Source: Piromyces finnis finn
Lineage: Eukaryota > Fungi > Neocallimastigomycota
DNA length: 64,000 nt
Direction of reading: 5' to 3'
Assembly: GCA_002104945.1 (NCBI GenBank)
Contig: MCFH01000003.1
Span: forward strand, 496,001 to 560,000
Part shown: positions 37,473-44,402 of the stretch, in pieces
How the letters are laid out: the number at the start of each line of letters is the position of its first letter
How positions within the stretch are numbered: position 1 is the first letter of the stretch
The notes under the pieces: generated by a model
The model's database searches: none
The model's input: the letters and a program-made list of their open reading frames with translations, nothing else
Told to the model about the DNA's origin: nothing
Program-made: the position numbers and the translations under genes

Positions 37473-38006
37473 TTAATTATTAGTGTTTCTTTTTTTATTA
37501 GATCCTTCAATATTCATATCATCAGCTTTTCTTTTTTTATTATTTGATTTTGTAATATCATCATCTAAACTTGATTCTGAATCAGAAATGGATTCAGAGG
37601 TAGTACTGGAATTTCCTTCGACATCAGAAATAGAAAATGCTTCAGAATCTGATTCTGTAGCTAATTTTGAATTAGACTTTTTTGGTTTTTTTCCTTTACT
37701 ACTTTTAATAGCAGGTTCTTTACTAGATTCTTTTCCCTTTTCTTTTTCTTCTCCTTCCCCTTCTTCCTCATAATCATCTTCAATATTAATATCTGTATCG
37801 TTATCAGAATCAATTTCTAAATCTTCTTCATTTTCCATTTCTTCATCTTCTTCCATTTCTTCATTATCTTTATCTTTTCCCTTATTTTTTGGTTTTTTAG
37901 TATCATCCTTATTTTCCTTTTTATTTGGTTGAACACGTTTTGACTTTAATTTTTGAATTTTTCTATATTCTTTTGATAATGTAATTATAAAAATAATATT
38001 GTAAGG

Positions 38007-38058
<52 letters not shown>

Positions 38059-38174
38059 TAGAGTAATAATAATGACAATAACAAGAACATATAAATATAT
38101 TGAAAAATATAAAGAAATCAATGAAATTGACGAATTTCAAATTTGATTTCGATTTTGATTTTGATTTCAATTTC

Positions 38175-38229
<55 letters not shown>

Positions 38230-38889
38230 TAAAATGTTTTAATTAATCTACCTTCTAAGGCATCCTTTAATTTATCAGAAAATTCGTCAAATTCTAATGT
38301 TTCTAAAGCAGAAAAAATATCATTGGCAGATAAAATTTTTTTATTAGTTGATTTTGTTACGTCATTAGCAGTAGCTGTTAAATAATTAATGAAAATGGTA
38401 GCACTTTTTGTCATAACTACTTTTGCTTCTTTATTAATTAATGCATTGTCTGGAAGCTATATAGACATAAAATAGCATAATAATAAGATAATATTTTAAA
38501 AAAGAAAAATAAATTAATAAACCTTTTTTATATATAAATTTTTGCAGAAAATCTATTTATTATATGGTGAATTTTATTTAATTGAAATTTTATATAGATA
38601 TATGAACACTATCATTCGTATAATAATAACAATGATAACAATGATAACGATAAAAAGTATATCTTTATTTATTTTCTTTTTTTTTTTTTTTTTTTTTTTT
38701 CAAATTTATGATGATTGATTAATAAATTGAGCCATCATTTAAAAATGAAATTTCATTTTATTTAATATCTTTTGAATATACATATGTAATATATTTTGTT
38801 AATTATGATATATATAATATATTTACAGCTGCTTTAATAACTCTCATAACACAAGCCTTTGGCAATTCAAATTCATCGATAGATGTCAT
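37473..38889 (-). CDS. DPB4: Histone-fold protein POLE3/DPB4/CHRAC17 with an acidic/basic tail, 3 exons
   Basis: MTSIDEFELPKACVMRVIKAA|LPDNALINKEAKVVMTKSATIFINYLTATANDVTKSTNKKILSANDIFSALETLEFDEFSDKLKDALE|EYRKIQK.. matches the POLE3 pattern (LPxAVITRIIKEALPD..SKEA..A..VF..Y..S.AN). Confidence 0.88.
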
Positions 38890-39762: not shown

Positions 39763-40808
39763 ATGCAAACAATAAAAATTGTTATTATTGGTGATTCCCA
39801 AGTTGGAAAAGTAATTATTTTATTTTATTTTATTATACCAATAAAAAAATCTATTCTATTCATTATCTTTTTATAATAATAAAAATTAAAATTTTAAATT
39901 AATAATTATATATATTTAATACTAACGTTTGATGGATGCTTCATTTATTATACTTTTTTTTTTTCTCTCTAGGATTTATTAATTTTTAATTATACAACGA
40001 ATAAAGGTATAAAAGATTATAAACAAACAGTTAAGAATCAAATATTTCTCATTTATTTTTCTTTTTTTTTTTTTTTATATATATATAAAGTAATTTTCTT
40101 TTTAATAATTAACCAAATTATTTTTTTTTTTAAATGAAATTCTTTTTTTTTTTTTTTAAATAAAAATATATACTATTATATATATAATAAAATAGTCCTA
40201 TGATAATTATGAGGTTACTATAAACATTTCAAATCATCCATGTAAATTAGAGCTTACTTCCGTTTTAGGTAAATTATCATGGGAATAAAAAAAAATATAG
40301 GATAAAAAAAATAAATATCTAAAAAAAAAAAAATTATTATCAATAAACTTTTTTTAATATTAATATCTAATTATTATCATTCAATATATATTCTATACCA
40401 CCACTATCACTATTATTACTACTAACACTTAACAATAACAACAATAAAAATAACAATAAAATAATTATTTTAAATAGCCTCGGCTGAATACGAAAGATTT
40501 AGACCATTATCTTATGCAAATACTGATGTTTTCTTAATGTGTTATAATGTCAATGATGAAGAAACCATGAATAGTGTTCGAAACAAATGGTACCCGGAAA
40601 TTCATAAATTTTGTCCCGGTACTCCTTATATTTTAGTTGGTACTCAAAAAGATCGTATTAAAGATGAAAAAAAATTAGAAGAAATAGATAAAGCTGGAAA
40701 GAAACTTGCAAAGGAAATTAAAGCAGTTAATTTTATTTCATGTAGTGCTGATACTGGAGAAGGAATCAAAGATGTTTTTAATAAAGTAATGCTTAAAGAT
40801 TAAATATT

Positions 40809-40848
<40 letters not shown>

Positions 40849-40974
40849 TTTTCTTTTTTTTAGAAATTAAAAATATTAATATATAACTATCTATTAATTT
40901 TATTATAGGCTATTATCGCAGCATTAGACCCAGGAACTGATGCACCAGATAATGACAATTGTATTATTCAATAA
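39763..40974 (+). CDS. Divergent Rho-family (Cdc42/Rac-like) small GTPase, 183 aa, 5 exons (39763-39810, 39973-40029, 40196-40268, 40478-40785, 40909-40974)
   Basis: All introns are GT-AG and the reading frame is preserved. MQTIKIVIIGDSQVGK|DLLIFNYTTNK..YDNY..RFRPLSYANTDVFLMC..KWYPEIHKFCPGTPYILVGTQKD..CSA..GIKDVFNK|AIIAAL..CIIQ*. Confidence 0.9.
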
Positions 40975-42004: not shown

Positions 42005-43770
42005 TTATTTAACATTCATAAAGTAAATTTGATCGTATTTATAATTCTTTGGTATGTTAAATAAATCGTCTGGAATATCATCTGGATTAATGCTACAATC
42101 AGTGACTCTAAGTTGAGCCTTAACAGTAGCTAATATTGGAACAATAATCTTTAATGGGAATTTTTTGTTACTATGAATCATTTTTTGAATACATTGAATT
42201 CCGTAACGGTATTCATCTCTATCAAAATGATCTTCTTCATCTGTTTTATTAACTTGATCAAAGAACATTAAACTGACATAATCAATTAAAGGTTGGAATT
42301 GATCTAAGCATACTGGGAAAGTATGTTCTTGGGACATCCAAAGTTTAATAGCATTATTGAATGATTTTCTTTCTTCATCAATACTCATAATACGACCCAT
42401 ATGTAAAATATCAGCATTTACTTCATTAAAGTATTGTTCTTCATTAACCTTACTATTTTCCCAATCAAAATCTTTAAGTCTTGCAACTTTTTCTTCCCAT
42501 TCTTTTTCCTTTCTAGCTTTTTCAATATTGGCTGCAGTTTTAGCAGCTTTTTCATGACGTTCATAAGCCTCGTCCCAATTTAATGTATCCTCTATACCAT
42601 CAGTAACTTCATAGTTGACAGTCTTTCCATTTTTATTGACGTCGGATGATGCTTTATCTTCATCACATATATTTTTAAATTCATCAATAAATTCAATCAT
42701 TAAATATTCAATATATCCTGGATACATTTGTTTCAAGTAAAGCATATCCCTTTCTGTAATGACATTACCATCATTATCTTTACCACGAAGAATCATATCA
42801 TTAATATTTTTACTGACGTATATATCAATATCTTTATAATCAACAATACTTTCATCAAGGTATTTTTGGAAAACACTTTCTGTTACTCTTGGTTCATTGG
42901 AGAAGGATTGACGAGAACTAGAAGTTTTAGTATTGTTATCATTCATGGAAGCGATAGATTCATCATCACTATCATCATCACTATCATCGTCGTCTTCCTC
43001 CTTGGAGTATTTTCCTTTATTTTTGAAAATATTACCTTTAAAGTTTTCTTTGTGGGATGATGCTGAATCGATCATGAAGGATTTTTCAATATTCATAAGT
43101 TTATTTGAAACAAGTTCTGATTCAGTAAAAATGAGACCTCCACTATCTCTTTTCATAGTTTTATTTCTAGATTGTTCAACATTTATAATTTTTGTTCTGA
43201 TATCACTTTTACGATCACCAATGGTTGTTTCATTTGTTCTTTTACGAATAATAAGTTTAAAATCTCTTGCTTTGTATAAATCAGATTTATATGATTTACC
43301 ACCTTCCATTTGAAGGGTTTTCTTTGTCTTTTTTAAGAGACCTCCCTTTTTTTGTTTAATAATGAAATTAGAAGTATCAACAAAAACTTTATATAATGTT
43401 TTAATGTCAACATTAGACATTAAAAGATTGTTGATTAACCATTGTGGCATTTCTGGATATAATTCTTGATAGGTTTTTTTCTTGTGATCTAATACAACAA
43501 TATTACACATACCATCAATTTTAAATTTTGCAATCACTGACATATTACCTTTAATGGCTCTTGGAATACCTCTAGTATCAAATCCAGCAATAGTAGTATC
43601 AAGTCTAAAGAAATTTCCTTTTTTATAGAAATGTATGGTATCTTTTGGGCATATTTTAGAAATCATTGGTACTATTTTTTTTTATTGAAAAAATAAATAT
43701 ATAAATTAGTAATTAGTATTAGTATCAAATATTTGTATTGACATTATTCCTACTTCTACTACTACTATTT

Positions 43771-43841
<71 letters not shown>

Positions 43842-44402
43842 TATTATCTATTATCTATTATTGTTTTCATTTCAATATGATTTTTACCTTGACTTTTACA
43901 CTTGAATTTTATTTTCATGTGAACATTTGGTAATACTTCATTCCATTGTTCTAATTTACCACCACTTACAGCAAAGCCTTTAATATAATCTCTGTACTTC
44001 ATTAATATAATTTTTTCAATAATATCAATATCACCAAGCCTAATAATTTATTTAAATTTTTATATTATTTTATTAGAAAAATGAGGAAAAACAATCTATA
44101 CACTAATCTATCTTTTATCTATATTTAAACTATATTTATGTGTGTAATATATACATGAGAGCTTCATCTAACGGATTCCAGTTATATGTATTTCTAGTAA
44201 TAACGTCACATCCATTATTAAGAAGAGCTATAATACAGTCTCTACGATCTAACATAAGGGCTAAATGAATTGGTGAGTTACCATGATGGTCTTTTTCATT
44301 GATACGTTTTTTCATTTCATTATCTTTTAATAATTCCAAAAGTGCTTTTCGGTCATCACGAAAAACACAACGATGAATTGGATAGGATTCAAATATAGTC
44401 AT
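42005..44402 (-). CDS. ANKRD13-like protein (N-terminal ankyrin repeats plus GPCR-chaperone-type C-terminal domain), 3 exons
   Basis: YPIHRCVF..DHHGNSPIHLALML..NWNPLDEALM|LGD..; VPMISKICPKDT..FRLDTTIAGFD..; C-terminal FPLKIIVPILATVKA and PDDLFNIPKNY. Typical ANKRD13 motifs. Confidence 0.85.

Follow-up and report, generated by a model that had tools for sequence, protein, structure and literature searches.

In a canonical Rho GTPase (Cdc42 numbering is used throughout), Mg2+ is bound by T17 and T35 and is held through a water molecule by D57, the γ-phosphate is bound by G60, Q61 and G12 serve catalysis, and F28 stacks on the base. Changes at T17 or D57 give dominant negatives that have poor nucleotide affinity and hold exchange factors, and Ras G60A is a dominant negative as well. 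T17N forms of Cdc42 and Rac1 have been crystallised with DOCK GEF domains, as recorded in the titles of PDB entries among our Foldseek matches, and Rac2 D57N, with its lower GTP binding, is a dominant negative that inhibits wild-type Rac (PMC5927519). Rnd and RhoH are described as proteins that bind GTP but, owing to changes at G12 and Q61, do not hydrolyse it (PMC11733253, PMC5927519). PseudoGTPases form a recognised class that is still small and centred mainly on animals, and their way of signalling without a switch has been called an open question (PMC11733253).

The gene described here is a genuine one, conserved in anaerobic gut fungi, and it encodes a Cdc42/Rac-like protein that is predicted to be lipid-anchored. 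It lies on the forward strand at positions 39763-40974 of a 64,000-nucleotide stretch of contig MCFH01000003.1 in Piromyces finnis assembly GCA_002104945.1 (the window; 19.7% G+C, in a very A+T-rich genome). Exon-wise reading and translation give five exons and a protein of 183 amino acids, the exon translations in order being MQTIKIVIIGDSQVGK, DLLIFNYTTNKGIKDYKQT and SYDNYEVTINISNHPCKLELTSVL, then a fourth that runs from SAEYERF to FNK, and finally AIIAALDPGTDAPDNDNCIIQ and the stop. Exon 1 (39763-39810) encodes residues 1-16 and carries the P-loop remnant GDSQVGK (39790-39810) with G12S and A13Q; intron 1 (39811-39972, GT..AG, 13% G+C) separates K16 from residue 17. Exon 2 (39973-40029) encodes residues 17-35. 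Here Asp replaces the Mg-binding Thr at position 17 (39973-39975) and Gly replaces the base-stacking Phe at position 28 (40006-40008), and the switch I residues Y32 and T35 are retained (the latter at 40027-40029). Exon 3 (40196-40268) encodes residues 36-59 and the first base of codon 60, with the conserved β2/β3 segment DNYEVTINI and the G3 remnant T56-S57-V58-L59 (40256-40267). Codon 60 is divided between exons 3 and 4 (G + CC, Ala), and exon 4 (40478-40785) supplies its remainder and residues 61-162, with S61, the switch II tail EYERFRPLSY, the G4 motif TQKD (40642-40653), the G5 motif CSA (40741-40749) and a shortened insert fused to helix 4. Exon 5 (40909-40974) encodes residues 163-183 and the stop (40972-40974), and comprises the end of helix 5, the acidic tail DPGTDAPDNDN and the CaaX box CIIQ (40960-40971). 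All four introns are bounded by GT..AG and have 8-14% G+C, compared with 16-36% in the exons. The exon-wise model, exon 1 included, agrees residue for residue with a 183-residue NCBI protein of Piromyces finnis (P0001), annotated as "P-loop containing nucleoside triphosphate hydrolase protein". That protein came up when the open frame around exon 4 was used in a word search, and it served as the whole-protein query; its gene occupies the identical 1212-base span, and from 38763 on its locus (L021) agrees with the window letter for letter. The exon translations and the identity to this protein bear out the five-exon model with an intact frame that a preliminary description had proposed from the DNA alone. 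Upstream and divergent, at 37473-38414 on the reverse strand, lie open frames that by eye look like a histone-fold protein of the Dpb4/POLE3/NC2 type with a long acidic and Lys-rich tail.

Full-length orthologues, also of 183 amino acids, are found in Anaeromyces robustus (P0003), in Neocallimastix californiae, N. lanati and Neocallimastix sp. JGI-2020a (P0126), in two environmental lineages (P0002, P0123) and in one uncultured lineage on metagenome contigs (L004-L009), and Pecoramyces ruminantium has an orthologue fragment. The four introns occupy identical codon positions in every genomic copy, that of intron 1 being shared with L001 and L004-L009. The convergent downstream neighbour, a three-exon gene for an ankyrin and ANKRD13_C protein of ~690 amino acids located by tblastn (42008-44402, reverse strand) and not part of the gene, is conserved in Anaeromyces (L001), Neocallimastix (L013/L014) and the L004 lineage, with 67-81% identity in tblastn. 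Because they share length, intron positions and downstream neighbour, these relatives are orthologues rather than look-alikes. Neocallimastix californiae encodes an identical 183-residue protein on two scaffolds (L014, L015), either through recent duplication or as uncollapsed haplotypes. As far as public data show, the family appears to be confined to the Neocallimastigomycota, since in a HMMER search of 1.84 billion cluster representatives only the cluster of the Anaeromyces protein exceeded 50% identity; nothing outside the group exceeded 48%, and the next single-domain matches in that library were canonical Cdc42 proteins at 47%. A scan of metagenomes for additional orthologues returned two contigs already known and one unrelated match of 35%, and full-text literature searches yielded no paper mentioning the gene. 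The closest canonical match in the word search (P0007, 48%) was rejected as a fungal parent, since it derives from a ctenophore data set.

Could the odd motifs be artefacts, either of a mis-spliced annotation or of a decaying pseudogene? Neither GK[ST] nor DxxG occurs in any frame of any of the four introns, so that alternative splicing has no canonical P-loop or G3 motif to restore, which disposes of the objection that real splice sites might bring GKT or DxxG back. The P. finnis junctions themselves are backed indirectly, since four other genomic orthologues have them at the same positions and three orthologues have what appear to be spliced transcripts. The coding regions of P0002, P0123 and the Neocallimastix protein are uninterrupted by introns on contigs of ~0.95-2.2 kb with UTR-like flanks, from several JGI samples, and these contigs (L002/L003, L016, L017-L020) translate exactly to the orthologues. 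Because genomic fragments of the same lineages carry introns (P0124 and P0125 run into an intron after FNK), the intronless contigs look like assembled spliced mRNA, and the gene looks to be spliced and expressed in these three lineages. On the mRNA-like contigs the exons join precisely at GK|D and SVE|D, which argues against mis-splicing as the source of the altered motifs.

Two of these contig sets have peculiarities of their own. The P0123 contig L017 has a 102-nt direct repeat, 97% identical, at 1-102 and 829-930, flanking the coding region; it is absent from the sister contigs L018 and L019, and may reflect a tandem copy of the gene, a repeated element or an artefact of assembly. The P0002 contigs hold two more open frames (L002:3-1061 and L002:1680-2204; also L003:1064-1531), lying 43 nt before and 25 nt after the gene; neither has a counterpart close to the gene at the other loci or in the window, and the two may represent overlapping transcripts or a chimeric assembly.

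The gene is clearly maintained under purifying selection. Nei-Gojobori dN/dS, totalled across the exon blocks without the split codon 60, is 0.04-0.23 in all 15 pairs from six lineages, and these ratios, though approximate because synonymous sites are near saturation in some between-genus pairs (dS 0.5-1.2 overall), are all far below 1. Taken by part, residues 1-59 have a ratio of 0.12, exon 4 one of 0.13 and the tail exon one of 0.17. The preliminary description had asked whether the gene evolves neutrally and whether orthologues carry the same losses; it does not evolve neutrally, and the relatives, in at least four genera, all lack the G1 Thr and G3 DxxG of the canonical motifs, as well as Q61. 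Changes private to P. finnis, among them SVLAS, Q34 and K117, are what a decaying copy might display; against decay stand the intact frame, equal length and shared intron positions in six lineages, together with the low dN/dS, and the artefact explanation in either form is close to refuted.

Alignment of the P. finnis protein to Cdc42 runs without gaps through residue 131, and ten positions of the nucleotide site and its surroundings differ from the canonical state: G12S, A13Q, T17D, F28G, F56T, D57S, T58V, A59L, G60A and Q61S. G1 therefore reads GKD for GKT and G3 reads SVLAS for DTAGQ. Retained are G10, G15, K16, Y32, T35, D38-N39-Y40, Y64, R66 and R68-P69-L70-S71-Y72, together with T115-Q116-x-D118 of G4 and C-S-A of G5. 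The tail is acidic, with neither a polybasic run nor a second Cys before the terminal CIIQ. Every substitution and retained motif listed in the preliminary description (G12S, A13Q, T17D, D57S, G60A and Q61S; T35, TQKD and CSA) is seen in the translation, as is the acidic tail ending in CIIQ, which lies in exon 5; F28G, the shortening of the Rho insert by nine residues and the closer likeness to Cdc42 than to Rac come in addition. The losses are those of the family as a whole. In place of the G1 consensus GxxxxGK[ST], GK is followed by D, K or N, and SVLAS, SVEDS or TVKES stands where DxxG and Gln61 would be; T17, F28, D57, G60 and Q61 are absent from all orthologues, and residue 28 is Gly in every one. 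K16, T35 of G2, TQ[KI]D of G4 and CS[AS] of G5 are invariant across the orthologues, and all full-length members end in CIIQ or CVIQ, a predicted prenylation site, behind the same kind of tail.

The lost-ligand positions also drift. Residue 17 is D/D/D/K/N across the orthologues, residues 59-60 are LA/ED/ED/ED/KE, and residues 13 and 62 have three states each. A ranking of the protein's sites by variability puts four of the nine lost-ligand positions in the top 20 (hypergeometric p = 0.009). The pN of the lost-ligand positions is 0.228, compared with 0.063 for the other codons of residues 1-72 (~3.6-fold), at similar pS. Since these positions vary more than the rest of residues 1-72, the former Mg/phosphate site is relaxed, whereas constraint persists in switch I, strand 2, the distal half of switch II, G4, G5 and the CaaX box. 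An unconventional working switch, in which other residues would bind Mg-GTP and the protein would cycle normally, might draw on the intact G2, G4, G5 and P-loop Lys; it is very improbable, with five separate ligand or catalytic residues gone and with a replacement at position 17 whose charge differs between genera (D, K, N). Lacking all these ligand residues, at positions that drift, the P. finnis protein is very probably not a normal Mg-GTP switch.

By profile match and predicted fold the protein is a small G domain of the Ras superfamily. Exon 4 alone matches Pfam Ras (PF00071) with E 9.4e-19 and 68 bits against a cut-off of 21.6, and Ras/Roc are the only Pfam matches of the protein, which has no BTB or BACK domain. 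AlphaFold2, with a 72-sequence alignment, predicts a confident G domain (pLDDT 86.9, pTM 0.84) whose last 12 residues are disordered, and the top Foldseek matches are Cdc42 and Rac structures, with TM scores of 0.80-0.86. The very top match, Cdc42 T17N with DOCK8, was set aside as evidence, the first 50 scores being nearly equal. In the model one continuous helix (123-139) replaces the insert helix, linker and helix 4 of Rho proteins, and the Rho insert, ~13 residues between strand 5 and helix 4, has a nine-residue gap against both Cdc42 and Rac1; the remnant is presumably ~4 residues longer than the corresponding segment of Ras.

All best matches of the protein are Cdc42 or Rac, which places it in the Rho family. 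Human Cdc42 scores 160 bits and Rac1 142 in a PDB sequence search, and BLASTP gives 166 bits (45% identity) for Cdc42 and 152 for Rac1. Group profile scores differ by just 2-8 bits, and of eight signature positions three are Cdc42-like, two Rac-like and three neither. All members have T56, a non-Trp residue, and Q116; Gln in G4 and non-Trp at 56 are treated as derived Cdc42 states in a recent survey (PMC13393502). In the tree the family forms a 100/100 clade on a stem of 1.87 changes per site, and its placement among Cdc42 and Rac is left unsettled by the free tree: neither a tree constrained to join it to Cdc42 (lnL +3.77 relative to the free tree, p-AU 0.62) nor one constrained to join it to Rac (lnL -0.98, p-AU 0.50) is rejected. 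The family thus appears to be Cdc42/Rac-derived, leaning to Cdc42, with trees that do not separate the two ancestries. The independent origin suggested earlier is in keeping with a fully supported clade found only in the Neocallimastigomycota; the family appears to have arisen in fungi, separately from Rnd and RhoH, and not to be orthologous to them.

What might such a protein do? The best explanation, to which we give a probability of about 0.6, is that it is a prenylated Cdc42/Rac-type pseudoGTPase, kept since the ancestor of the Neocallimastigomycota. It combines a G-domain fold with loss of essential G-motif residues, conserved in the orthologues, and the label of candidate pseudoGTPase given earlier is a fair one for a gene that is intact and under purifying selection and whose every orthologue is without the G1 Thr, DxxG and Q61. 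A Cdc42/Rac-type Rho GTPase would have become, in that ancestor, a stand-alone small G-domain protein with a farnesyl-type CaaX box, and without the Mg2+ and γ-phosphate ligands the normal Mg-GTP/GDP switch cycle could not run. The protein would reside at membranes, probably endomembranes: its acidic tail, without a polybasic run or second Cys, suggests these rather than the plasma membrane, by analogy with farnesyl-only proteins. There it would bind a Rho-pathway partner constitutively, through the conserved switch I/β2 and distal switch II surfaces, and is most likely a permanent binding partner rather than an on/off switch.

The main rival to this reading is an always-active protein of the Rnd/RhoH kind, which would hold guanine nucleotide, weakly or without Mg2+, would not hydrolyse it, and would signal constitutively to effectors, with output set by expression and farnesyl-dependent localisation. 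Rnd proteins too have a CaaX box of the farnesyl type, to which one ending in Q belongs. Alongside the invariant K16, T35, TQxD and CS[AS], the effector strand D38-N39-Y40-x-V42-T43 has been conserved. S/A12 and S61 fall at the two positions that are altered in RhoH, Rnd and RhoBTB1/2 (PMC5927519; PMC13236570). GTP binding by RhoBTB2 has been reported even though its G3 region carries a deletion (PMC4931677); sequence alone therefore does not prove that binding is lost, and the invariant K16, TQxD and CS[AS] could allow residual guanine-nucleotide binding here. However, Rnd and RhoH keep T17, D57 and G60, all of which are replaced in this protein, and the base-stacking F28 is Gly in every orthologue. 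Moreover, replacements that differ between genera (D/K/N at 17, A/D/E at 60) argue against any specific phosphate or Mg chemistry at the old ligand site. Constitutive signalling of this kind is possible but unlikely.

For the pseudoGTPase reading, the partner we favour is a Rho GEF, which would be held as it is by the T17N, D57N or G60A dominant-negative alleles, and the GEF-bound protein, itself encoded in the genome, would damp or localise Cdc42/Rac activation. The protein could then be viewed as a farnesylated natural "dominant-negative" Cdc42, a nucleotide-free GEF trap that unites lesions of the T17, D57 and G60 type in a built-in brake or localiser, for example of zoospore versus rhizoid stages; this full picture is tentative and, taken by itself, rather doubtful. 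No single mechanism or partner is likelier than a GEF trap, although its odds are themselves low; the preliminary description proposed a nucleotide-insensitive scaffold or GEF sink, and the GEF sink is a plausible idea. Position 56 is a known determinant separating Cdc42 from Rac (PMC13393502), and T56 together with the variable residue 62 is not what would be expected of a well-kept GEF interface.

The family would be an independent fungal case of a pseudoGTPase within the Rho family, in which the residues lost are exactly those that laboratory dominant-negative alleles destroy while the stand-alone prenylated format is kept. Its six natural dead-site variants offer a comparison series for what a Rho G domain does without Mg-GTP, and the gene is a clean marker limited to the Neocallimastigomycota. 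Anaerobic gut fungi are hard to manipulate.

Compared with Cdc42, the family shares the fold, the MQTIK start, V42, I46, a TQxD G4 motif and AIxAAL[DE]P at the end of helix 5, but it lacks G12, A13, T17, F28, F56, D57, T58, A59, G60 and Q61, its insert is nine residues shorter, and its tail joins an acidic stretch to a farnesyl-type C[IV]IQ where that of Cdc42 is polybasic with a geranylgeranyl-type CaaL. With Rnd1-3 and RhoH it has in common the absence of Gly12 and Gln61 (PMC5927519, PMC13236570), as well as a small, stand-alone, prenylated format in which control by a GTPase cycle is not expected. The analogy to Rnd/RhoH that was drawn earlier holds for S/A12 and S61, and fails at the Mg and phosphate ligands, which Rnd and RhoH retain and the P. 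finnis protein has lost (T17, D57 and G60, with F28); it does not show the pattern of those proteins, in which 12 and 61 are changed and 17, 57 and 60 are intact. Because T17, F28, D57 and G60 are lost as well, it is closer to the engineered and disease dominant-negative alleles than to Rnd/RhoH.

The likeness to T17N, D57N and G60A is in places literal: Neocallimastix has N17, P. finnis has A60, and D57 is lost in all orthologues. Those alleles, however, are single engineered or disease mutations, whereas the family combines several such changes in a gene under selection, along with changes at 56 and 62 that possibly alter GEF contacts. In RhoBTB, too, the G domain derives from Rho, its G3 region is damaged and Gly12 is absent (PMC4931677). 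RhoBTB proteins carry BTB/BACK domains and a longer insert (PMC4931677), unlike the P. finnis protein with its single domain of 183 amino acids and shorter insert. An unrelated Cdc42-like protein of 190 amino acids from a JGI metagenome (P0220), 36-39% identical to the family, has N17, K57, a full-length insert and a CVIV end, and is an independent case of the same type of decay, so that degenerate Cdc42/Rac-like proteins arise elsewhere too. With Rnd, RhoH, RhoBTB and this metagenome protein, the kind is thus already known; what appears to be new here is an independent fungal variant in which, judging from its sequence, an unusually complete loss of the Mg/phosphate site is combined with a minimal prenylated format.
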